Assembly (NCBI GenBank): GCA_002269645.1
Contig: NIVC01004513.1
Span: 1 to 43,561, forward strand
DNA length: 43,561 nucleotides
From: Macrostomum lignano
Taxonomy: Eukaryota
Reading direction: 5' to 3'
The notes beneath the pieces were generated by a model, which did not search any database, was not told the origin of the DNA, and saw only the letters and a program-made list of their open reading frames with translations. The translations under genes and the position numbers were made by a program. Position 1 is the first letter of the stretch, and each line of letters starts with the position of its first letter. Positions 4,425 through 41,294 of the stretch are shown one piece after another.

Positions 4425-7400
4425 ATGAAAGGTGCATTCTTTAACGACTCATCTGAAGGAGCCAACGCTACTGGCAATGGCACCGAGGACGATTGCGCTA
4501 AAAGCTTACGTCTCTTCACTGACAGCGAGCGCCGCTTCATTCTTGTCACTGACGTTGGTCTATCCTCCGCAATCTGCTTGCTTGGCCTGCTTCTCAATTC
4601 ACTGTCTATTGTCGTGCTCAAGCGAGATGTGCGCCGATCATCAATGAGTATTCTACTCCTGGCTCTTGCAATCTGTGAGCTTTTTATTTCCTTTTTGTTA
4701 GTACAAAAAATACAGGGTGCAAACGATGGGATTACCTTTTCGGGTCTAGAAAGGCACCTCCGCACAATCTTTTTCTTCCCAAGACTAACAGTATTTCAGG
4801 TTTCAACTTAGCGTCGTGGCTTGAACGTTCAGATTTTTTACTTACTCAGATTATACCCCAGAAATATGCCACTCCCAAAAATCGCCACCTTTACATGAAT
4901 TCCTCATTTCTCTAGGAAACAGAGCCTTTCGCGAATTTCAGGAGCTCTGAGCCCATTTCTAACTGACTGGTGGCTGCTTCCCCACCTAATCCCCTTCTAT
5001 TTAGCTTTATGCTATTCGAGATACTATTTCTTTTTTCACTAGATTACCAGCATAGATATGCATCCTAATTTGATGCATATTTTATCAACCCGAGAATGGA
5101 CGTCGTGTTGCTTTTATCAAAATGCTTTTAGTGAACTTCTTGTAGTGCAAGATAAGAAATGTGACGTGAGGAACAATATGTATAAGGATTCTTTAGTGCA
5201 AGAAAGGATTTAGCGTGAAAGAAAATCTCCCGTTTACAGCAAAAGAAGCTCGATCGCCAGAGCCAAGGCTTAGTTAAACTGAGACGTTTCACTTCGGATT
5301 GACGCGTTTGCTCACGGCCCGATCTCAACTCTCGCACTCGTCTTTTGAAAAGTTGTTCATCTTGATTTTTGAGCTCGCTATCGGTACTTCTTTAAATCCC
5401 GATCGCCCCCTGGAGCGCGCACTGGCTGAGTGTTTCCAGCTCGTACCAAGAGTGAGTGGCCGACTGTGAGGCCAGTGGAGGAGGGGGGGGGAGAAAAAAG
5501 TTAGCAAAGTGAGCCAGGGAGCAAGAAGCTTTTTCTCTTTTCGCTTTGCCTGATTGAGCATACAAACCCCCGGTTAATATCGCAACTTGCGTTCGGCTTG
5601 ATTAGCCAGGAGATTCGCCGGCGAGAGCCCTTTTGCTCCTTTGCTCTGATGCAGCTTAATCATCCTTTCGTTTCTCTTGACTGGCATCCCGAGAGACTGT
5701 TTATCAGAAGAAAATTCCAACTTGAGTCATTTTTGGACCCCCGGGAGGGAACGCGCTTGCAGCTACGAGTAACTCACGAGCAACTCAAGGCTCCTGCTGA
5801 GTATGTATATATTAACCAGTGATTAAGAACAGTTTGACTTTTCCCTGTATTTAAGCTTGGCACACTTTCGACTTTGCCCGTCGAAATTTTCTTATAAAAA
5901 AATAATCTAGTCATTTATAACGAAATCGTTTAAACAAGAGTTCTTTTTGTTCGGTGCATACGCTCGTATGTATACGAGACCCAATAAAGTACTGACATTT
6001 TCAGTCCTGTTGTACAACTGATTTCAGGTGACATTTCGATTTCGCTTTTCGTTAATTTCAGCGGAAATTAATTAATTCTTCGATCTACCAATGCATGACG
6101 TTTGCAGTAGGCTGTGATTCCAAAGGGTCAGGGTCGCCACTGAGTTGTCAGCCGGTAACTTGGCTACTGTTGCCTAAGCACCATATTGAAGTCCATTTTG
6201 ATCAATGCATGATTAGTTCTGATCAGCGTGTACGAGTACAGAAAACCAATTCTAGCTGGGTTGGGCCTCTGGAACTCATCATCCGGCACAGAGTTTGATG
6301 CACCGGGATGCAAATGATACGCTTGTTGAATACACTCTTTTGTCCTAATTTTGTTCTTATTTATAAAAAATTGCAGCCTTCCTCCACTGTAGCTGAACTT
6401 GAAGCACACATGCGGGATAAATTAAGTTTCTGTTTCTTCTCTGTAACAGCTGTAATAAAAAATCTTAAGTGGATTCAGGCGCTGTCAATCAACGAACTTA
6501 TTAGTATGCTATTCTATTGGATATTCTATTGGATATGTGGGAAAAGTTTTACTTCAAACTTTCCCTCTTCAAATTTTCCCCTGTTTTATTTCGAGCGTAA
6601 TGATTAAAGTACGCTTTTACCCGCGTAAGAACGGTCGTTAACGAAACACTGTACCTGAATCTGTCACAATTCAGTGGCAAGACATTCTACCGACACCCAA
6701 CCAACTGATTTTCTTCATTGCAGTCGATTTGACCTTCATCTTACTGTCGGCGCCCTACTTCGTTGTGTACATGGGCCTGGGCTCCATCATCCAGGACTCA
6801 CATGGCGTAACTCTGCAGACATGGCTCCATGCCAGTCCCGGCATTCAGTTAATCCTGCCAGCTGTTTATTATCTGGGCAATGTTGCACGAACAGGTCGGA
6901 ACTGGATTGTCCTGCTGGTGGCACTGGATCGCTATATGGTTGTGCAGAATCCGTTCTTATCCACGCAGCGCAGCAATCCGAAGCGGTCAAGGCTTTACTG
7001 CATATGCGTCACGATTACGGCCATGTTTTACAACTTCCCGCTATTCCTGGAGTATAAATCGGATACGATAAAGTGCTTAAATATCAGCTTGATTTTGGCG
7101 CGCCCGAAAAGTCTGGGTAGTGCGTACATGTTTATATATAAGAAATTGCTGTACATTCTCCTGCTTACAGTTGGGCCTATGTTATGCCTGACGGCCCTTA
7201 ACATTCTTTTGATTCGAAGTTTGCTGGTGGCCTCGCGAATCCGCGCCGCCATTACTCGGGAGACCACGCGGCGCACTGAGGAGACCAAAATGCTGGTCGT
7301 CATTATTGCCGTGTTCGTGCTTACCGAGATACCTGGCACCATCTGGCACATGCTCCTGGGCACAAAATTCGACAAGAGCGCATGGTTCAACTCATACTTG

Positions 7401-7832
7401 TACTCGGTTGGCTCGCTACTGACACTATTCAATTCCGCTATCAACTTTTTCATTTACTGCGTTTGGAGTCGCAACTTTCGGCGCAACATGCTCTACGCCA
7501 TGCGCCGGCGAAAGAAGCCACCGGCCCGGGTGATTCGCTTTGACTCCGACTCAGACCGCACCCGGCAGCTCTTGCTACAGCAGCAGCAGCAGCAGCTGCT
7601 GTGTGTTCGGCAGCCACCGGGTCCCGAGCAGCAGCGACATCAACAGCGCGCGGAGTCCCTTCCTATGCAAGTTCTGCGCGCTTCACCGTTGAACAGTGCA
7701 GGCGGTGTCGCTGATGGCTGCGGTGTTGCTGGAGGCTCTGTTGATGAAAACTGTGACAGTAGAAGTGACAGCAGTGACCGCAATCACAATTTTCAGCAGC
7801 AGCGCGTGCAAATCAATCCCCTGCGTGTGTAA
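4425..7832 (+). CDS. Class A (rhodopsin-like) peptide GPCR, FMRFamide-receptor-like; join(4425..4674,6724..7832), 452 aa
   Basis: Exon 1 has an ATG, N-glycosylation sequons (NDS, NAT, NGT), TM1 and the start of TM2. The GT donor at 4675 and AG acceptor at 6722-6723 join in phase 1 to give LALAIFDL. Exon 2 has ALDRY (TM3), the remaining TM helices, NSAINFFIY (NPxxY-like) and a Gln-rich tail. Confidence 0.9.
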
Positions 7833-9098: not shown

Positions 9099-9547
9099 TT
9101 TGGGTACACGAGCTATAGCCCTTCAAAATAAGCAGAAATGCTCTAAATTGCTTTTGGGTACACGAGCTATAGCCCTTCAAAATAAGCAGAAATGCTCTAA
9201 ATTGCTTTTGGGTACACGAGCTATAGCCCTTCAAAATAAGCAGAAATGCTCTAAATTGCTTTTGGGTACACGAGCTATAGCCCTTCAAAATAAGCAGAAA
9301 TGCTCTAAATTGCTTTTGGGTACACGAGCTATAGCCCTTCAAAATAAGCAGAAATGCTCTAAATTGCTTTTGGGTACACGAGCTATAGCCCTTCAAAATA
9401 AGCAGAAATGCTCTAAATTGCTTTTGGGTACACGAGCTATAGCCCTTCAAAATAAGCAGAAATGCTCTAAATTGCTTTTGGGTACACGAGCTATAGCCCT
9501 TCAAAAATGCCCCAAATGGCTTTTGGGTACAGGAGTTCTAGCCCTTT
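9099..9547. repeat. 54 bp minisatellite, ~8.3 copies
   Basis: Near-perfect tandem unit TTTGGGTACACGAGCTATAGCCCTTCAAAATAAGCAGAAATGCTCTAAATTGCT. Confidence 0.97.
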
Positions 9548-9913: not shown

Positions 9914-12900
9914 ATGTCTAATCCATCCGCACCGGCTGCAGAAGAGCTTGCTTCCGATCAGATCTTTATCGATTTCGAAATCGATAGCGAGTGGAAAAAG
10001 TGCATCTACAGTGACTGCAGCAGAGCGGGACCACAGCGGTCTCGAAATAACTCTTCCACCGCCCTACCGGCGAGCTCAAGTCCTGTTCCAGTGGTGAGGC
10101 TTTTTAAAATCTCCTGAATATACGCAACTCACGCCCACTGTAGGCCTAAAATGAGACTGCGAATAGTAAAACCATTTAAATATAGTGTTCAAGAATCAAG
10201 AACTACTCCTAACTACTACTAGAGCTTACTAGTCTCGCGCAGTGCCAGTGGTTTAGATTGCTTCTAACCAGAGAAACCCGCCTACGGCCACAGCCAGAGC
10301 CGGGCTTCCTGCACGGCTGCCAGAAGACTTTGCGACAGTCCTTTGAGGCCACGAGCCTTCGTCGGGATGCGCACAGTGTCACCCTCTGGCTGTGCGTCAG
10401 GAAGCACAATTACGAGAACTACTTGTGGCAGTTTGTGCGCCTTGGCCGGTTCCACGGGAGCGAAGCGTACTCAAACTTGTCGCTGTGGACTGTTCAGCTG
10501 CGAGTTCGAATGCACCGACGAGTTCCCTTTGGTTGTCTTCTGCGAGGTCTTTGCTGCCGCTTCGGGCTCGGCTCGACAAGTGAGGCTCTTAAACTGTGTT
10601 TGGACGGCTTCTACGGCATGCCTGGCTTTGGCGACATATTTGGAAACCATAGTGACGGTAAGCTGTGAGCCATGGCATATTATTAAACTTACTTTAAATT
10701 ATATTATACTGAAGTAGTATATTAAAGTTCATTTTTTACTTCACTACTTGTCGCACAAATTGAGTCACGTCACATAACAATGAAGATTGCGGTGCGAAAA
10801 CAAAAAAATAGAAGACATTTAAGATTGACAAGCAAAAAATAGCTACGAAATTTTAACATAGTACTTGGGGCTCTGAGCACTTCAACGTTGAGAACTCGAG
10901 TGATGCGGAGCTGTGCTCAAATTCGTGTGCACCACGCCAGAAGAGGCACCCTCTGCGTTCAACCAGGCCCAAGGCGGAGACATTCTACCATTGTCTGTCT
11001 CGAAAACCACAGACACAATCGATCATTGTCTGCCTCCAAAACCATAGACACAATCTACCATTGTCTACCTCCAAAACCATAGACACAATCTACCATTGTC
11101 TACCTCCAAAACCATAGACACAATCTACCATTGTCTGCCTCCAAAACCACAGACACAATCGATCATTGTCTGCCTCCAAAACCACAGACACAATCGATCA
11201 TTGTCTGCCTCCAAAACCATAGACACAATCTACCATTGTCTACCTCCAAAACCATAGACACAATCTACCATTGTCTACCTCCAAAACCATAGACACAATC
11301 TACCATTGTCTGCCTCCAAAACCATAGACACAATCTACCCTTGTCTGCTTCAAAAAACACAGACACAATCTACCATTTACCATACAACCTCCAGAACTAT
11401 GGACCCAATCTACCCATTTTTTAGACTGGTGTCCCCAAATCGAGAGTTAAAAAAGTGGATGACAGACAAACTTGTGCTAAACAGTCCTGTTTTTCACATT
11501 TAGATGCAGTTCCGTGGATGGAAATCTCAAATCAATCAACGGCGGACAGCCTCCAGCTACACGATGGAGACATTATATTTGTCAGCTATTCAAACGAAAA
11601 ACTCGAAAGCCTGGCTAGAGCTCGGAAGCGTGCTCTCGTAAATCAGTCGGCATCCAGCAACGTTGCTCGGTCTTTTGCTCCCAGAAGCAGTACAACCAGC
11701 GATACTGACTCTATTTCTTTAGCACCATTCGGAAAGCTTTCAAAGCCAATCTCGCAGAATGCCATGCCACTGGCAGATTCGGTCTCGCCGCCGCCACTGC
11801 ACATGGCGACAAAGATGCCTACGCAGCCTCGGGCCCGGTGCGCATCAATGCCCGCGGCTCACCCGGGCCAGCCAATGTGCATCTCTGCCGCCGCCACCTC
11901 GGCAGACATCCAGTTCTGTGAGGCGGTTATCAACACCAGCAAAACAGAGTTGGTGCATTTACGACTTGGTTTTTCTTTCTTTGTCTATGCGGCTTTGACT
12001 TATGACCCCAGGAAAAATATTTTCATACACGATACCTGGTTGATTCTTCAACCAGGCTTTAGCCACTTCATTCAGTGTGTAGGCTCTCATATTTCGTATC
12101 AATCGGATCAGATTATTGAGATTTTCATTTACCAATTTTTATGATATCTCGTAAACATCTAACTGATTAACAAACAAACAGGTTAGACCAAAGCCTGGCT
12201 GAGGATGGCATCGAGACAGAAGTGTTCGCAAAAGATGGCTGGGGCCTTCATCCCGGTGCACTAAATAAGCTACATCAAGCGCATTCAGACATTGGAGACC
12301 TCGTGCGCGTGTCCTATCCCAGCTCCAAGCGTACAGAGAAACTTGGCTTAGTGCTCACACCGGAGCTGATGACTTGGATGTTGGACGCTGCCAAAGATCA
12401 CCGCACTCCACTCATCCATCCACTGCTCCCGAAAATACGGGCAAAGGTGTTCAGGTGCGACACAGCCTCAGACGTTGATGCCGCCGATGGACTCGGAGCT
12501 GGCATCGGAGCTGGTAGAGGAGCTCTTGAGGAGCTGCGAAATTTCGCCAGCAAAGTTGACAGCATGCTGCGGGTCCGCTGCGCCGGCTCAGGAAGCTTCT
12601 TGGATATCTGGTCGCCAGAGAGTGCAGCCTATTTTGTCGTGGATACTTTCTTTGGTTCCTCGATCTGCAGCATCTATGGAATCGAGCGGGACCATCGCTT
12701 CCACTCGTACGCTGTGGACGCAGCGTTGCATGAGCTTGAAAAAGGTTTTGTGACATTCTTCAGCGGCAATTCCGGTAGTCAAGCAAAATTGCGTAAAGCC
12801 GACCTGGACAAAGCCTGGGAGAATCTCTATCGCCTGCACCCGACAGCCCAGGAGCTGGCTGCCGCTGAGCCATGTCATCATTTCAAGGATTTACTCAACA

Positions 12901-14800
12901 GAGCCCTAAAGAGTGCGTGCAACTGCTTGTTGACTGTTTGATTTACCATATATCGGCCGTCCTAACCAAAACGCTATGAGCATAGACACTGGCACAGGGA
13001 ACAGAACAGCAGTGCCTGTCCTAACCAAAACGCTATGAGCATAGACACTAGCACAGGGAACAGAACAGCAGTGCCTGTCCTAACCAAAACGCTATGAGCA
13101 TAGACACTAGCACAGGGAACAGAACAGCAGTGCCTGTCCTAACCAAAACGCTATGAGCATAGAAACTGGCACAGGGAACAGAACAGCAGTGCCCGTCCTA
13201 AGCAAAACGCTATGAGCATAGACACTGGCACAGGGGACAGAACAGCAGTGCCTGTCCTAACCAAAACGCTATGAGTATAGACACTGGCACAGGGAACAGA
13301 ACAGCAGTGCCTGTCCTAACCGGACCAAAACACTATGAGCATAGACACTGGCACAGGGAACAGAATGGCAGCGCCCACGCCTCTTGTGTTCCACTTTAAA
13401 GTTGATAACCAAAATGCTCACTTTTAGTGGAAACCGGGTCTGACCAATACAAGTCGCACCTCCAATCTAAACTAGCAGCAATAGCTTTATTTGTTATCTC
13501 AGAAAATTAACTCATGTATTTTCCAGATCCAAATAAGTCTTGGAGAGCCTTTGTCGGCTGCAGCATCAACTGTCTCTATAGCGACTACAGTGCTAAGAAA
13601 GCAGCTTTCTGGGCAATTCACTATCTCATATCTCACACAGCCGTGCAGGAGAGCCTGTTAGCCGAGATCGATTCCATGGCGACCGCAGCAAGACCGCACG
13701 AATTTCGGCGATTGACGCTCAAGGAGCTTGATGAGATGCCATTTCTTGGTGGGTGACACTTGCTTTGATTCTATTGAATATTTCGCGAAGCTCAGAGTCA
13801 ACTTTTCATTTCAGAGGCCTTCGTAAAAGAAGTTTACCGGCTCACGTCGGGGCAGTTCGTTAGCTTCAGAGCTGGAACTGACTTGTTGTTGCAGACGCAG
13901 AAGAACTCTGAAGGCATCTGCTTGCACAGCGGTGAAGAGATCGGGGTGCTGCTTCGTTCATTGAACATGGACCCCAGTCTGTTCAAAAATCCAGAGGTGA
14001 GTTTTTGGCTGTTAGTACTGAAAGTGCAGGTGAACATAGATATATGTTGTTAGTTATTCTGGGTCTAAATTACTCAGTACTAGCTTAAGATTAGTGATTA
14101 CTTTTGACATTCGCTTCGATATGGTTATAAGTAAAAAAGCTAGCGAACTATTTAGCAGCATTCAGATCTTAAAAATCTAAAGTCATTTCATTCTTTTGGA
14201 ATAGAAGATCATAATCCGGTGTGGTTTGCGAAGCTTAAAATACGGCCTGCCAAGCTACTTATTCAGGGGAGGAGGGTTGGTGCCGTACGTAAGGGTGGTG
14301 GTCTACTTGTAGAGTCTCGAAGTCAAAAGCAGAACTTTTGAGATGTCGTTCAGACTTTACAATGCACACTCCGATCTCCTTGGCGGCAGCAATGACACGA
14401 CACCTTGAATCCCACTTGAAGTATCGTAGAACGAATTCAATCCTAACTGGGATGATTTCTAGTGTGCTTCAACAAAGTCTTTTATTGCCGTACAGAAATG
14501 CGAATTCCCGTCCATTGTGCCACACAGGCGTTCCAGCCGCAGCGCTTTCTGTTTGAGACCCAGCATGCGGAGCTCCTGGCCCTGCCGTTCGGCTGTCTGT
14601 GGCCTCGCCGGCGCCTCGGGCTGTTGAAGCTTAAGCTGTTCTTGGTGCTGCTGCTGAGCCGGTGCCGCATTCGGGCTGATGAAGGCACAGGCGCTCAGGT
14701 TGACGCCAGCGCCTTCTGCGTTGATATTCTGCCCTGGACGGAAGACGTTGTCTTTCAGTTCCAGGCCAGGGAGCAGATGAGAGCGACATTTACGCTTTAG
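9914..14800 (+). CDS. Predicted SUMO-like-domain / cytochrome P450 fusion protein, 815 aa; join(9914..10093,10243..10657,11504..11948,12182..12912,13527..13748,13815..13996,14528..14800)
   Basis: All six introns are GT-AG with matching phases (0,1,2,1,1,0), giving 2448 nt without an internal stop. The N-terminal part aligns by eye to SUMO and the C-terminal part has P450 motifs. The exon 1-2 and exon 3-4 joins are the least certain. Confidence 0.55.
10492..11583 (+). other. SUMO-like (Rad60/NIP45 SLD-type ubiquitin-fold) domain split by the 10658-11503 intron
   Basis: VQLRVRMHRRVPFGCLLRGLCCRFGL..ALKLCLDG...EISNQSTADSLQLHDGDIIFV resembles SUMO [52 protein letters not shown]. There is no C-terminal di-Gly. 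Confidence 0.6.
10984..11378. repeat. 35 bp intronic minisatellite, ~11 copies
   Basis: Unit CAATCTACCATTGTCTACCTCCAAAACCATAGACA with minor variants. Confidence 0.95.
12182..14800 (+). CDS. Cytochrome P450 module, CYP7/CYP8/CYP39-like, 4 exons (12182..12912,13527..13748,13815..13996,14528..14800); lacks N-terminal membrane anchor and canonical heme Cys
   Basis: N-half pattern LHQAHSDIGDLVRV...LVLTPELM...IRAKVF; I-helix end AAFWAIHYL..VQESLLAEID; ExxR (KEVYR); DPSLFKNPEAFQPQRF (PERF); heme loop LPFGCLWPRRRLGLLKLKLF. Confidence 0.85.
12959..13375. repeat. 59 bp intronic minisatellite, ~7 copies
   Basis: Unit CCTAACCAAAACGCTATGAGCATAGACACTGGCACAGGGAACAGAACAGCAGTGCCTGT, lying between two P450 exons. 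Confidence 0.95.
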
Positions 14801-15174
14801 TGTGACGCGGCTCTTTCACTAGCCTCATGTGAAAATCAATCAGAGCTGAGCCCAATATTTTGAACTAATTGCGCCAGGTATTGCATATCTCCCTCCCTTT
14901 GCTTCTGTTCCGCCATATTTTTACGATATAGGTGTTAATTATCTTGTTACTATTCATTTCCTGTTCTGATTTGTCATGTAAAAGAGTAAGCAGCAGAAGG
15001 GCTATAGCATTTTATATAGATATTGTTTTTTTACTATAGACGTCTATATTAGTTCAGTAGTTAGAGCAATAAAAAGGAATTTCAGCTACGGCTCATGTTT
15101 TCGGTAAGTGAAACTGTACGTGTGAACTTAAAATCTGTCACTTTTATATCTACTAAGTCGGAATTTGTGTAGAG

Positions 15175-16491
15175 GGCTACTCACACCTGTCTCCCAGACT
15201 CAGTTTACTGAGATTTGAGTAGAAGGCTACTCACACCTGTCTCCCAGACTCAGTTTACTGGGATTTGAGTAGATGGCTACTCATACCTGTCTCCCAGACT
15301 CAGTTTACTGGGATTTGAGTAGAAGGCTACTCACACCTGTCTCCCAGACTCAGTTTACTGGGATTTGAGTAGATGGCTACTTACACCTGTCTCCCAGACT
15401 CAGTTTACTGGGATTTGAGTAGATGGCTACACCTGTCTCCCAGACTCAGTTTACTGGGATTTGAGTAGATGGCTACTCACACCTGTCTCCCAGACTCAGT
15501 TTACTAGGATTTGAGTAGATGGCTACTCACACCTGTCTCCCAGACTCAGTTTACTGGGATTTGAGTAGATGGCTACTTACACCTGTCTCCCAGACTCAGT
15601 TTACTGGGATTTGAGTAGATGGCTACTCACACCTGTCTCCCAGACTCAGTTTACTAGGATTTGAGTAGATGGCTACTCACACCTGTCTCCCAGACTCAGT
15701 TTACTGGGATTTGAGTAGATGGCTACTCACACCTGTCTCCCAGACTCAGTTTACTGGGATTTGAGTAGATGGCTACACCTGTCTCCCAGACTCAGTTTAC
15801 TGGGATTTGTAGATGGCTACACCTGTCTCCCAGACTCAGTTTACTGGGATTTGAGTAGATGGCTACACCTGTCTCCCAGACTCAGTTTACTGGGATTTGT
15901 AGATGGCTACACCTGTCTCCCAGACTCAGTTTACTAGGATTTGAGTAGATGGCTACTCACACCTGTCTCCCAGACTCAGTTTACTGGGATTTGAGTAGAA
16001 GGCTACTCACACCTGTCTCCCAGACTCAGTTTACTGGGATTTGTAGATGGCTACACCTGTCTCCCAGACTCAGTTTACTGGGATTTGAGTAGATGGCTAC
16101 ACCTGTCTCCCAGACTCAGTTTACTGGGATTTGTAGATGGCTACACCTGTCTCCCAGACTCAGTTTACTGGGATTTGAGTAGAAGGCTACTCACACCTGT
16201 CTCCCAGACTCAGTTTACTGGGATTTGAGTAGATGGCTACACCTGTCTCCCAGACTCAGTTTACTGGGATTTGTAGATGGCTACACCTGTCTCCCAGACT
16301 CAGTTTACTGGGATTTGAGTAGATGGCTACACCTGTCTCCCAGACTCAGTTTACTGGGATTTGAGTAGATGGCTACACCTGTCTCCCAGACTCAGTTTAC
16401 TGGGATTTGTAGATGGCTACACCTGTCTCCCAGACTCAGTTTACTGGGATTTGAGTAGATGGCTACACCTGTCTCCCAGACTCAGTTTACT
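15175..16491. repeat. Minisatellite with 50/47/46/43 bp unit variants, ~27 copies
   Basis: Unit GGCTACTCACACCTGTCTCCCAGACTCAGTTTACTGGGATTTGAGTAGAT; variants carry a 4 bp and/or a 3 bp deletion. Confidence 0.97.
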
Positions 16492-17594: not shown

Positions 17595-20500
17595 CTAGCA
17601 GTAGCTGCAGGACGCTGGCCGGTGACCGCTCTGGTGCCGCGAGTCCGCCTGGGCGATCGAGCCGCTGGTTTGGAAGTTTTGCTTTGCCAGAAGCTTCCTG
17701 AAGATCATTGAATTGATAAGTCAAGTTTCAATCCATCAGCGCCGCTATTTAGGTCTTGGGTATTAATTATTATTAATAACGGGGTATGATAGGGAATAAA
17801 AAAGAAACGAAGTTATATTGTTTCTTCAGCACTTCTTCATGATTTCGTTTACAACAAAAGCCATCAGCCATAGCCTCCTCCCCTCAGCCCTGCGAAGCCA
17901 TTCAAACCACAGTCAGAAGCTGACCTAACTAGCACCAATCAGATCCCATGAGGCAAGTTGAGCAGCTATGTAATTCAGTAGTGCACTAAAATTGAGTTGT
18001 CATCATTCTGATTGTGTATTTGCCATCATGCTGATCGTGTATTTGCCATCATGCTGATCGTGTATTTGCCATCAATCTGATTGTGTATTTGCCATCATGC
18101 TGATCGTGTATTTGCCATCATGCTGATTGTGTGTTTGCCATCATGCTGATCGTGTATTTGCCATCATGCTGATCGTGTATTTGCGATCATGCTGATTGTG
18201 TATTTGGCATCATGCTGATCGTGTATTTGCCATCATTCTGATCGTGTATTTGCCATCATGCTGATCGTGTATTTGCCATCAATTTTGCCATCATGCCATC
18301 ATGCTGATAGTGTATTTGCCATCATGCTGATCGTGTATTTGCGATCATGCTGATTGTGTATTTGGCATCATGCTGATCGTGTATTTGCCATCAATCTGAT
18401 CGTGTATTTGCCATCATGCTGATTGTGTATTTGCCATCATGCTGATTGTGTATTTGCCATCATGCTGATCGTGTATTTGCCATCATGCTGATTGTGTATT
18501 TGCCATCATGCTGATCGTGTATTTGCCAGCATGCTGATCGTGTATTTGCCATCATGCTGATCGTGTATTTGCCATCATGCTGATCGTGCATTTGCCATCA
18601 TGCTGATCGTGTATTTGCCATCATGCTGATCGTGTATTTGCCATCATTCTGATTGTGTATTTGCCATCATGCTGACCGTGTGATGACTGAAAACACCAAC
18701 TGAAAACTGATGCGTCGCACGATATTTCAAGCTGATAAATACAAATTTACGTACTTTGTCCGGATCGCTGCAGCTTGGGCGAGATGGACCAGTGAAGGCT
18801 TGAATTTCATAGTTAACGTGGAAATCGTTATAGCACGCTTTTCAAGAGCATCTAGGCAGAAGAAGAAAGGCAACTTACCGTCCTATTGTTTGGAAGCAGA
18901 GGTCAACATTGTGCCCCGTCCTGGCGCTCGTCTCCATAAAACACATTATGTCGCACTCCTGTGGGCAGCGTTGAAATTAAAATGACCCCCTCGATTTTCT
19001 GGATTGAAAACTCAGAATTAACCTGTGTGACCCACCTGAGCTAGCCGCTGCCCTTCGTGAGCGCTAACCTGCCTTTCAGAGTCCAGATCAGCCTTGTTGG
19101 CTACCAAAATGATGAATACATCCTCAGAGCCGTATTCGCGAATGTCCGTGAGCCAGGAGCGGACACTGCTGAATGTCTGGCGGCTGGTCAGATCGTAGAA
19201 TAGCAGAATAGCTGTGCTCGGCAAAAAGTCGGATTGAGAGCTTCCAGCTCACTGAGACTGTTTTCATTGATGCAGTCACTCAACAGACCTATGCTTTCGC
19301 TTCTGCACTTGTCTAAATTAATTCTTCCCATCTCAGCCTCTTGCCTACCTGCCGGTTCTTCTTTATACTCGAATTTAAGCAAATGACCGCTGCCTTTTAT
19401 CACGCTTACTTTTTAACTACTCGTAACTCTAGTCGAATGGTTTTGTCACTTTGGAACTACTAAAGTAGGAATTCACATTTCCATGATAGCAATACACTTG
19501 CGCATGCGCGTGAAAGAGGAAACGGTTTGCAATGCTCACAGTCAGCATCTCTGTAGTACGCACTGGTGATGCTCCGATATCGCTCCGTACCGGCCGTGTC
19601 CCAGACCTGAAAGATGGGACACGTGCTGCATGGTTGGTCAATTGCATGAGCGCAAAGTTTTCAGCTCTCTGGGTTTAAAATGTGGAAAGAATAAATATCT
19701 GCTCAAGAGAAAGATGATTCACATTCTAGAAGCTTCTATATTTTTCTTACTTCATGTTTCTTCATCAGAAATAGCTCGTAGTCCTGGGCAATACAGTAGA
19801 AACATATACGTATGCATCCTAGCAGCATAGATTTCGTCAAACTAGCTTTGTGAGCAATTGGAATTATTCTAATTGAGCTAAAAGTGAACTGTAAAAGTAC
19901 GAGCGTATATTTTACCTGAAAGCGAACTCTGTAGCCATCCACTGGCAGTGTTTTGCTCTGGAATAAACATATATATAAATTACTGACTGAGGATCTGGGA
20001 GGCTGCCAAGCTGCAAAACGATTGTATGTACGAGTCTTGAAGCATAGAATTTGTAAAGACGGTCTCTTTGATCGTGGGCTCATAGTGCCCGGAGGGTGCA
20101 AGTGTCCCTGGGGGGGGGCCTTTCAGGTGGATGACCGCGCTCTTAGCCGCGTGGGCTGTTTGCGCAAGGTGAACTGACCTGCGCAGGGAACTGGTAAATG
20201 GACCACTTGGTATCGCCATGAGCCTCAAAAGTTAGTGCCCCTACTATAGTGTGACCGATTTAATTTTTTAACATTCTACATTTCAGCAACATGAAACATG
20301 AATTGGCTCGAAAGGTTCCAATGGGGAAGTCTCGGCAATGGAAAAGCTGTGACATATATATATACCCCAGGCCGCTGAAACATCGTCATAAAATGGACGG
20401 GAAAACCTCGTCAGGAAGAAATGAGATGCTCGCTGAAAAAATAGCATCTCATAGATCGTTCTCCATAATCTATTAAGTTAATTTGCATGAGACGCACATC

Positions 20501-20796
20501 TTAGTATGCCTTAAAAGATTTAAGAACTGAGAGTAAGAAGGTGCAAAAATACAGCGAACCCTGTAGTCGACCCCGACCGTGCTGATAAAAGTGCTGCCGG
20601 GAAACTTGGCGTCCTTGAACTGGTGCATAAAGCTGGTCTTGCCGGTGCCGCTGTCGCCAACCAGCATCACCTTGCACGATACATCGAAGGGATCGATGCT
20701 GATAGACTTCTTCAGCAAGCACCGGCCTGGCTCCTCCTCTGCGTCCGAGTCGCCCGGCAGGGCAAACCGAACTCCCGATGCTTCCGAGGCCAGTTC
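17595..20796 (-). CDS. Rab26/Rab37: Rab26/Rab37-like small GTPase, 5' end unresolved; complement(join(17595..17697,18879..18958,19036..19211,19540..19606,19916..19957,20560..20796))
   Basis: Phase-consistent GT-AG exons encode KVMLVGDSGTGKTSFMHQFKDAKFPGSTFISTVGVDYR, SKTLPVDGYRVRFQ, VWDTAGTERYRSITSAYYRDAD, NKAD, ETSAR and a C-terminal CSYC prenylation motif. QFKD...TFIxTVG is typical of Rab26/37. No start exon was found. Confidence 0.9.
18001..18682. repeat. 23 bp minisatellite in the last Rab intron, ~29 copies
   Basis: Unit CATCATGCTGATCGTGTATTTGC with point variants. Confidence 0.96.
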
Positions 20797-23520: not shown

Positions 23521-36497
<12,977 letters not shown>

Positions 36498-39995: not shown

Positions 39996-41294
39996 ATGGC
40001 ATCGTTGTGCTCAGTGGTTTGCAATATTTTACTCGCAGTACTCTGTGCCAGTGCACTTACAGGAGCCATAAGGGAAGAAAATGCGACCCAGCTAGAGGTC
40101 ATCATGCACCAATATGATCGCCTCTTTCGGCCATCGCCTTCGCTGGATCAGAACAATGGAACCAATGACAAAGCCGACGAAATGCTACAAACTGCTACTC
40201 AAGTTGAAATCGGCGTCAATGTGCTTAGCCTTGGCCCAGTTGATCAGGTACGAATGGAGTTCAGGGTTGAGATGCAACTGCTAATGCGCTGGATTGACCC
40301 ACGTTTGCGCCGAAACAGCGCCTCAAAGTCAGTAAGCAGCCAATTTGTTGGTCTGGTCCTTAGCCGCAGGGCGGATTCAGTATGGCTTCCGGGTGTGTAC
40401 TTTCCCGGTGCTACAGTCGTGCGCCGGCCTGACCGGCCATCCAGAAACATTCTGCTTTGGTTGTGGCCGAATGGAATGCTTCAGTACAGCCAGAAGTTGG
40501 ATGTAGTTTTCCGCTGCCGCATGGATGTAAAATGTTTTCCATTCGACACTCAGACTTGCTTAGTTGACATTGGAGTTTTTGACTTGAGCAGCAATGATCA
40601 GCAACTCAGTTGGTTTAAAAATGGAGTCACTTTTGAAAACCCGAATGCTGAGTTCAACAGTGAGTTTCATTCGCCTGTTATCGAAACAGCCAGCGCGGAA
40701 TCGTTTTCAGCCGAGACCGGACTCAACTTCAGTCATCTCACTGCGTCATTTTCCCTGCGCCGACGCCACACTCGTTACATCCTGACTAACTACTTGCCAT
40801 CTACATTTATTGTGCTCACTACTTGGTCATCGTTCGCCATCGATCATAAGTCACCTCCAGCCAGAGTGTCCTTGTCATCTCTATGTCTAGTGGCCCAGCT
40901 TACACAAAGTCTCAGTTTGGAGTCCAAACTGCCCCAGGTGTCATACGTTACCAGTCTCGGCATATGGCACACCGGCTGCATAGCATTTGTGTACCTATCC
41001 TTGCTGGAGTACATGGTCATTAACTTGCTAAGGATCCGGAAGCTGCGGCGACGTAAGCGCCAACAAGCGCTGGCCGCAAAGCGCCGGCGCGGGGGCACAC
41101 TGGGCCCGGCTGCTGCAAGTGAGGCGGCCGCTGCCATTGTGGCTGGTGCCGTAGTTCACCTTAGCAGCGGCCGCAAAGTCTGTTGGTATCTCACGCCCTC
41201 GCGGCTGGACTTATTCTGTCTGTTTGCTTATCCTATTGCCTTCTTTTTGTTCAATGTACTTTACTGGACACTTGCAGTGGACTGGCAGCACTGA
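39996..41294 (+). CDS. Cys-loop (pentameric) ligand-gated ion channel subunit, GABA/glycine-receptor-like anion type, single exon, 432 aa
   Basis: Signal peptide, Cys loop CRMDVKCFPFDTQTC, WIDPRL, four TM segments, PAR motif before M2. Confidence 0.95.
   Translation: MASLCSVVCNILLAVLCASALTGAIREENATQLEVIMHQYDRLFRPSPSLDQNNGTNDKADEMLQTATQVEIGVNVLSLGPVDQVRMEFRVEMQLLMRWIDPRLRRNSASKSVSSQFVGLVLSRRADSVWLPGVYFPGATVVRRPDRPSRNILLWLWPNGMLQYSQKLDVVFRCRMDVKCFPFDTQTCLVDIGVFDLSSNDQQLSWFKNGVTFENPNAEFNSEFHSPVIETASAESFSAETGLNFSHLTASFSLRRRHTRYILTNYLPSTFIVLTTWSSFAIDHKSPPARVSLSSLCLVAQLTQSLSLESKLPQVSYVTSLGIWHTGCIAFVYLSLLEYMVINLLRIRKLRRRKRQQALAAKRRRGGTLGPAAASEAAAAIVAGAVVHLSSGRKVCWYLTPSRLDLFCLFAYPIAFFLFNVLYWTLAVDWQH

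Follow-up and report, generated by a model that had tools for sequence, protein, structure and literature searches.

Positions 9914-14800 of the forward strand of Macrostomum lignano contig NIVC01004513.1 (assembly GCA_002269645.1), whose 43,561 nucleotides form the window, carry one gene whose product joins a SUMO-like domain (SLD), a linker and a cytochrome P450-like module. The gene is annotated in GenBank from transcript data as BOX15_Mlig033662g2 and encodes protein PAA47265.1 of 798 amino acids (aa). BOX15_Mlig033662 was also the best database match for the P450-like translation. The protein was deposited under the name 'hypothetical protein', stands in UniProt as uncharacterised and has PF00067 as its only precomputed domain. 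It consists of four parts: a short acidic N-terminus, the SLD, a disordered linker of about 90-115 aa rich in S, P, A and T, and a diverged P450-fold module without membrane anchor. The domain architecture of this gene is new, while its folds are known and the gene itself had already been deposited; the SUMO-like half, the family of SLD genes from which it comes and the loss of the usual heme-binding cysteine had not been described before. Neither a search of 1.84 billion representative proteins nor a literature search for Mlig033662 or an SLD-P450 fusion returned another such protein or a paper mentioning one, which agrees with the preliminary description of this stretch, made from its letters, that knew of no such fusion. 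That description had also called it the best candidate for an undescribed system in this window, which holds for the uncharacterised architecture but not for the gene, present as it is in both GenBank and UniProt. We consider it probable that the locus is an expressed M. lignano gene giving one soluble 798-aa protein, in which a predicted non-canonical P450 fold is combined with an SLD that would mimic SUMO.

Our gene model was built from the three forward reading frames and the location of splice sites, and its translation is residue-identical to PAA47265.1 (P0029), including the junction 11948/12182 between the two modules. All seven exons lie on the forward strand. Exon 1 (9914-10093, aa 1-60) starts with the ATG at 9914, encodes the acidic, S/P/A-rich N-terminus and is identical to the GenBank coding sequence (CDS). 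Exon 2 (10294-10657, aa 61-181/182) encodes an N-terminal helix, beta1, a two-helix insertion, beta2, alpha1 and beta3, and exon 3 (11504-11948, aa 182-330) the end of the SLD, a C-terminal helix (to 11676) and the S/P/A/T-rich linker (11677-11948). The SUMO-like domain is thus split by intron 2 (10658-11503, 846 bp), and intron 3 (11949-12181, 233 nt, phase 2), with donor GTTGGT and an acceptor reading ...AACAAACAG, marks the junction between the modules. The P450-like module begins with exon 4 (12182-12912, aa 330/331-574), which encodes its N-terminal half, and continues through exon 5 (13527-13748), which covers the I-helix region and in which the Pfam p450 match begins, exon 6 (13815-13996), with the K-helix carrying ExxR and the beta-sheet region as placed by Pfam and PDB alignments, and exon 7 (14528-14800), with PxRF, a degenerate Cys-loop, the L-helix, the C-terminus and the stop codon at 14798-14800. 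The six introns are all of the GT-AG type, with mutually compatible phases 0, 1, 2, 1, 1 and 0, and have a GC content of 36-47%, compared with 50-61% in the exons.

The frame of exon 2 was checked by alignment with stand-alone paralogues, and its fold is backed by an AlphaFold2 model. A second frame of this exon, open over 10270-10717, was rejected, since frame 1 alone can be aligned to the paralogues and runs on into exon 3 over a conserved intron. The single spliced seven-exon open reading frame (ORF) of the preliminary description is upheld, since it equals the transcript-derived GenBank CDS, is retained in each of the three genomic copies and shows purifying selection; the deposited CDS has exactly its junctions, 10657/11504 and 11948/12182. 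Exon 2, however, had been made to start at about 10243-10249, whereas it begins 45-50 nt further downstream, at 10294, so that the product is 798 and not 815 aa long. The linker is likewise present, but measures about 90-115 aa (50% S+P+A+T), depending on the choice of domain end, rather than the 130 or so first given.

The N-terminal module is a SUMO-like beta-grasp domain, as judged from profiles and a predicted structure, and spans 10375-11589 (+; aa 88-210), interrupted by intron 2, with a SUMO-aligning core at aa 129-209. Searches with the single sequence were blind to it, and the domain emerged only with a family profile and a structure model. In the protein of the window, neither Pfam ubiquitin (PF00240) nor Rad60-SLD (PF11976) was matched at E<=1, the N-terminal 411 aa and nine paralogues gave no match to either above threshold, and a phmmer search with the N-terminal 330 aa against PDB returned nothing at E<=10. 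The best Rad60-SLD score among 10 family members, E 0.25 for one paralogue, is below significance. Hence the HMMER scan proposed with the preliminary description recovered the p450 domain but no Rad60-SLD or ubiquitin match in the single sequence.

We then relied on an alignment (A1) of the window domain and its homologues, which served for the PDB search, hhalign and AlphaFold2. When PDB sequences were searched with the A1 profile, the top 38 matches were SUMO2/3, Drosophila SUMO and yeast Smt3, bar one unnamed chain, with E 9e-7 for a di-SUMO2 chain and 0.003-0.1 for single domains. Comparison by hhalign of A1 with SUMO1/2/3/Smt3 gave a probability of 91.7% (E 7.6e-7, 58 columns, from beta2 to beta5), against 0.1% for ubiquitin/NEDD8. 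The AlphaFold2 model of aa 60-240, with A1 as alignment, reached a predicted local distance difference test score (pLDDT) of 82.9 and a predicted template modelling score (pTM) of 0.72, and the top 50 Foldseek matches of this model in PDB are all SUMO/Smt3 (E 5.6e-5 to 7e-4); isolated SUMO chains gave target-normalised TM-scores of 0.7-0.87 with a root mean square deviation of 2-4 A. The SUMO-like fold proposed from the letters is therefore borne out by the family profile, hhalign and AlphaFold2/Foldseek together.

In the A1 alignment the conserved domain has about 130 residues, and its invariant positions include W-T in beta2, R-x-G, D-G-F-x-G and the P of PWMEIS. Two features are additional to the SUMO core: beta1 and beta2 are separated by an insertion of two helices, and beta5 is preceded by a conserved loop (DGFYG...PWMEIS) some 40 residues long. 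No di-glycine follows beta5, past which the sequence reads ...IIFVSYSNEKLESLARARKRAL, and GG is absent from the whole 798-aa protein. We therefore take this to be an integral, non-conjugatable SUMO-like domain and not a modifier.

The domain belongs to a family of small stand-alone proteins. An exhaustive phmmer search of the same 1.84 billion representative proteins found nine clusters of SLD homologues (E 2e-28 to 7e-5), whose members have 214-372 aa and carry the domain by itself, with neither a P450 nor any other Pfam domain. Eight of the nine come from M. lignano (BOX15_Mlig015520, 022324, 027574, 014754, 027033, 010594, 006860 and 019084), and the ninth (P0005) is from a Logan contig of run SRR30276812. 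The M. lignano stand-alone proteins share with the window protein the domain itself (20-37% identical across some 175 aa), an N-terminal 'NNS' motif, and the position and phase of an intron within the domain; they differ in ending soon after the domain, at 214-372 aa, in having no P450, and in lying among unrelated neighbouring genes. In one of these paralogues (P0006) the intron falls at the same codon and in the same phase as intron 2, which validates the exon 2/3 junction and indicates that an ordinary SLD-family gene was the source of exons 1-3.

Several further observations concern this family. Logan contig SRR30276812_169748 (1016 nt) is intron-less and apparently a transcript; it encodes a 218-aa stand-alone SLD protein closest to P0006, and every other member of the family was traced to the M. 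lignano genome assembly. UniProt entries with accessions beginning A0A1I8 bear names such as 'Rad60-SLD', 'SH2', 'Protein kinase', 'FERM' and 'NSE4', which could not be reproduced with Pfam and were not used as evidence. The names of seven entries of this series (P0002, P0003, P0004, P0016 and P0026-P0028), including 'Spt5-NGN', 'TF-B3' and 'UAS', are likewise unsupported by Pfam and look mis-assigned. For A0A1I8GFI7 (P0006), the UniProt name 'Rad60-SLD domain-containing protein' agrees by chance with the fold found here. As for short motifs, IFIDFEID (9962-9985, exon 1) is a hydrophobic-acidic stretch that resembles a SUMO-interacting motif (SIM) by eye only. 'NNSSTALPAS' (10046-10075, aa 45-54) and the linker segment 'QNAMPLAD' (11755-11778, aa 266-273) resemble 'NNSMPLADKAY' near the N-terminus of P0005 and P0006, which may point to a short linear motif characteristic of the family, with a second instance in the linker. 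Two instances of the pentapeptide PFGCL, encoded by different codons, were noted, one within helix alpha1 of the SLD (10525-10539, aa 138-142) and the other where the P450 Cys-loop begins (14585-14599, aa 728-732); with a chance expectation of about 0.1, this is probably a coincidence.

The second module was recognised by Pfam PF00067 at 67.4 bits (cut-off 22.8, E 1.3e-18), the match spanning only profile positions 283-440 of 462, that is, from the I-helix onward. Its length of about 468 aa fits that of a P450 minus the anchor, and by eye exon 4 shows the 'G-D-L-V-R-V ... L-V-L-T-P-E' pattern usual in the beta1 region of P450s, so that both length and inspection make a complete P450 fold plausible. 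Of the full-length fold first proposed, the part from the I-helix onward is detected by PF00067, while the N-terminal 254 residues match no PDB sequence at E<=10. The PDB P450s score 33-36 bits, with CYP11A1, CYP17A1, CYP1A1 and CYP7A1 at this level and PGIS also among the matches; CYP7A1 gave the longest alignment, CYP11A1, CYP17A1 and CYP1A1 score equally or higher, and no clan stands out, including the CYP7/8 type suggested in the preliminary description. As had been noticed from the letters, the module lacks an anchor, a hinge and a start codon of its own and begins at the acceptor AG (12180-12181) with LDQSLAEDG. No hydrophobic segment of transmembrane strength was found in the whole protein, the highest mean Kyte-Doolittle value over 19 residues being 1.59, in the P450 L-helix.

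When aligned with the PDB P450s, the module keeps ExxR as EVYR (13829-13840, aa 653-656) and PxRF as PQRF (14537-14548, aa 712-715). The Cys-loop reads PFGCLWPRRRLG (14585-14620), which does not conform to the FxxGxRxCxG signature with its axial cysteine; in the phmmer alignments the ligand cysteine lies opposite Arg (CYP17A1, CYP1A1 and CYP2A6) or Trp (CYP11A1). The I-helix motif (A/G)Gx(D/E)T is represented by YSDYS (13577-13591, aa 591-595), followed by AAFWAIHYLISH, as counted back from the aligned AFW/LQW. The motifs for classical monooxygenase chemistry are thus, by alignment, not conserved in this module. Since neither the heme-thiolate cysteine nor the acid-alcohol pair of the I-helix is conserved, a non-catalytic or atypical role appears more likely, and this motif loss lends some indirect support to the idea of a sensor or scaffold.

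The fusion could also be real and its P450 module an active soluble heme-thiolate enzyme that uses a displaced cysteine, Cys731 of PFGC, while the SLD would only localise, solubilise or regulate it. There is indeed a cysteine inside the Cys-loop, 2-6 residues from the canonical position, the module keeps ExxR, PxRF and the PFG start of the loop, and it is under purifying selection; moreover, P450s of the CYP7/CYP8 and CYP74 types are active although they lack the classical I-helix Thr motif. However, in each of the four HMMER alignments printed, the ligand position is taken by Arg or Trp instead of Cys, neither the conserved Gly of FxxG nor the Arg/Cys spacing is intact, there being one residue extra between F and G, and the Pfam score of 67 bits is low for a P450, with a match that stops at 440/462, near the Cys-loop by query coordinates. 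There is also no membrane anchor with which to meet the microsomal reductase. We regard an active enzyme of this kind as unlikely, though it is the alternative that we would take most seriously.

Whether the two modules are made as one protein depends on intron 3. Its GC content of 0.36, compared with 0.54 in the flanking exons, is the lowest of the locus. Its donor GTTGGT and its acceptor are identical in all three genomic copies, and the three GenBank copies all have the same 11948/12182-type junction. Two near-identical UniProt models of the A0A1I8 series (P0002 and P0003) have the same junction, ...NTSKTE followed by LDQSLAEDG, with other exons that differ from the GenBank CDS. The annotation of the assembly consists of RNA-seq-derived transcripts only (StringTie/TACO plus de novo transcripts), and wherever experiments had mapped a trans-splice or poly(A) site, the transcriptional unit was cut (PMC5730564). 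No such cut was made between the SLD and P450 modules.

These points bear on the possibility of two genes in the same transcriptional unit, an SLD gene ending at the stop codon at 12144 and a downstream P450 gene joined to it by an operon or read-through, in which case the fused CDS would be an assembly artefact or a rare chimeric isoform. M. lignano has many operons, whose genes lie about 100 bp apart, and polycistronic precursors make up about 7% of its assembled transcripts (PMC5730564, PMC8629364); the stop at 12144 lies only 37 nt ahead of the acceptor, the donor and acceptor of intron 3 are both weak, and there are stand-alone SLD paralogues that are similarly sized. If intron 3 were retained, the frame would run to the stop at 12144-12146 and give a 411-aa SLD-only product. 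However, the frame is kept across the phase-2 junction, the stretch between the modules contains neither AATAAA nor ATTAAA (AATAAA first occurs at 15068, past the final stop), the TBONE pipeline, which cuts at mapped spliced-leader and poly(A) sites, left the unit whole, the junction is identical in the three GenBank copies and the two UniProt models, and no other part of the locus is as poor in GC as intron 3. A downstream P450 mRNA would, in addition, lack a usable start. The spliced leader of M. lignano has 35 nt and ends in ATG (PMC8629364); joined to the acceptor at 12181, this ATG yields MVRPKPG followed by a stop, out of the P450 frame, and no in-frame Met occurs in the first 63 residues of the module, before module residue 64. 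Hence no separate P450 mRNA would yield the module, and trans-splicing at 12181 to give an independent P450 was rejected on reading frame. Two genes in place of one thus appear very improbable. The three substitutions found in intron 3 across the three copies are uninformative on a coding signal.

The two further copies of the gene (L001 and L002) are 98-99% identical to that of the window, introns included, and have all seven exons intact; from this identity, the three copies are best described as recent duplicates or homeologues. In the copy on NIVC01003205.1 (g1, L002 3745-9313), intron 2 extends over about 5.6 kb, compared with 846 bp in the window, reflecting a large insertion or repeat expansion. 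Divergence among the copies is about 0.5% in exons and 1.7-4% in introns, and pN/pS is 0.13-0.25 overall. The P450 half shows 9 synonymous and 3 non-synonymous changes, against a neutral ratio of about 1:3.3 (binomial P ~2e-4). In the N-terminal half, non-synonymous changes are confined to the first 14 residues and the linker, and the SLD core is free of them. Although the numbers are small, this pattern suggests purifying selection with both modules under constraint, and argues against a decaying relic.

Such a relic would be a young chimera without selected function, a by-product of the duplicated and repeat-rich M. lignano genome, whose P450 half is in decay. The architecture does occur in M. 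lignano only, in three near-identical copies, the P450 motifs are degenerate and the introns carry expanding tandem repeats. Yet the seven exons are intact in three copies and 3-5 times less divergent than the introns, and the excess of synonymous changes is most marked in precisely the half that should be decaying (9:3, P ~2e-4), with no non-synonymous change in the SLD core, so that we give this explanation little credence.

For the expressed fusion that we favour, the following origin could be envisaged. The SLD half would have kept the three-exon structure of the small stand-alone SLD genes, and a 5'-truncated P450 gene, minus the exon for its anchor and hinge, would have been captured downstream of such a gene. 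A new weak donor, GTTGGT, inside the former last SLD exon would then have been spliced to the first remaining acceptor of the P450. The P450 module is most likely a non-canonical P450 fold, since the position of the heme-thiolate cysteine and the I-helix motif have been lost and purifying selection nevertheless persists; it would most likely act as a small-molecule-binding or scaffold module and not as a classical monooxygenase. The surface of the SLD, by mimicking SUMO, could tether this module non-covalently to SIM-bearing proteins or to a Ubc9-type E2.

A number of points weigh against this reading. The first 254 residues of the P450 module gave no match in PDB at E<=10, and a single-sequence AlphaFold2 prediction of the module (pLDDT 34) was unusable. 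The alignment of the Cys-loop is ambiguous, its sole cysteine, Cys731 of PFGC, lying 2-6 residues upstream of the canonical position, where it might still ligate the heme through a remodelled loop. Intron 3 has a weak donor, GTTGGT, and a weak, purine-rich acceptor tract, and other isoforms may exist beside the fused one, because retention of this intron gives an SLD-only protein sized like the stand-alone paralogues. The RNA support for the fusion comes second-hand, through the annotation method, and as such suggests a fused transcript. The selection test draws on about 22 substitutions, the copies being 98-99% identical. The docking of the SLD on SUMO-recognising partners is proposed purely by analogy with Rad60/Esc2/NIP45, whose integral SLDs bind their partners in this way, and the architecture is known from M. 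lignano alone.

Many long and well preserved tandem arrays occur in the window, at 9099-9506, 10980-11377, 12959-13365, 15183-16491, 17997-18681, 24657-25623 and 32065-32329, with periods of 54, 35, 59, 50, 23 and 40 bp, plus a (TC)n tract, and with copy numbers that vary between the genomic copies. Two of them lie inside introns 2 and 4, and one (54 bp x 7.6, with copies 100% identical) just upstream of the start of the gene. At 6729-7832 (+), a 367-aa ORF matches the rhodopsin-family seven-transmembrane domain (PF00001, E 2.4e-13) and is not among the genes called on the contig; from its sequence it may be an unannotated single-exon gene for a G-protein-coupled receptor, or a pseudogene. The other neighbours are an Arf/Ras-like small GTPase of 191 aa (17595-20667, -), a TB2/DP1/HVA22 (REEP-like) ORF (25753-26325, -) and an ORF for a Cys-loop ligand-gated ion channel (39996-41294, +). 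The neighbouring genes look ordinary, with no functional tie to the SLD-P450 gene.

The scope of these results is one species and a gene deposited as a hypothetical protein, for which a function can be proposed from its parts. P450s are among the best-catalogued protein families, and their known natural fusions are with redox or other catalytic partners. A ubiquitin-like partner, together with the loss of the canonical thiolate cysteine under continuing purifying selection, points instead to a non-enzymatic reuse of the P450 fold, of which, to our knowledge, few cases are documented. If true, such a protein could link SUMO-dependent protein assemblies of a regenerating flatworm to the binding of a small molecule, be it a lipid, a sterol or a xenobiotic. 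That this would be the first P450 fold reused as a ligand-binding or scaffold module without heme-thiolate, and wired to the SUMO system via an integral SLD of a new cryptic family that has expanded in M. lignano and is known almost only from it, is a doubtful proposition that we advance tentatively. The family also matters in its own right, as at least eight M. lignano paralogous groups carry a SUMO-like domain missed by standard domain annotation. These groups are candidate lineage-specific regulators of SUMO-dependent processes in a model organism for stem cells and regeneration.

The closest parallels to the N-terminal half are the RENi proteins (Rad60/Esc2/NIP45-NFATC2IP), in which integral SLDs occur as two tandem domains at the C-terminus (PMC549199, PMC2946365, PMC7849368). 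Like them, the window protein has a SUMO-like beta-grasp built into a larger polypeptide, non-conjugatable and without C-terminal di-glycine, an acidic/hydrophobic N-terminal region, and basic residues in beta2/alpha1 as in SUMO. Unlike them, it has a single internal SLD (aa 88-210 of 798), followed by the linker and the P450 module; this SLD carries the two-helix insertion and the loop of about 40 residues and does not significantly match Pfam Rad60-SLD, and its homologues in identified organisms are from M. lignano only. The SLD-P450 protein is not a member of the RENi family, which has two C-terminal SLDs, nor is it a canonical P450. SUMO1/2/3 and yeast Smt3 are the best profile and structural matches of the domain and share with it R-x-G after alpha1, F-x-(F/C)-D-G and (E/D)-D-G-D-x-I-x-V, but the window domain has no GG processing site, is about 12-15% identical to them, contains large insertions and is embedded in a protein of 798 aa.

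With animal microsomal and mitochondrial P450s (by score, CYP11A1, CYP17A1, CYP1A1, CYP7A1 and CYP8A1/PGIS are closest), the second half has in common PF00067 from the I-helix to the L-helix, ExxR, PxRF and PFG. It differs from them in lacking the N-terminal anchor and the Pro-rich hinge, in having the cysteine aligned to Arg or Trp and AGxxT changed to YSDYS, in scoring 33-36 bits at most against solved structures, and in an N-terminal half that is undetectable by sequence. As for fusions, the active heme-thiolate centre of CYP102A1 receives its electrons from a redox partner, a reductase joined to the P450. In the oomycete CYP5619 family, a P450 is fused to a peroxidase/dioxygenase (PMC5919972). 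Both resemble the M. lignano protein in combining a P450 fold and a second domain in one polypeptide, but the partner there is catalytic, whereas here it is an N-terminal ubiquitin-like domain, presumably for protein interaction, and the heme signature is degenerate.

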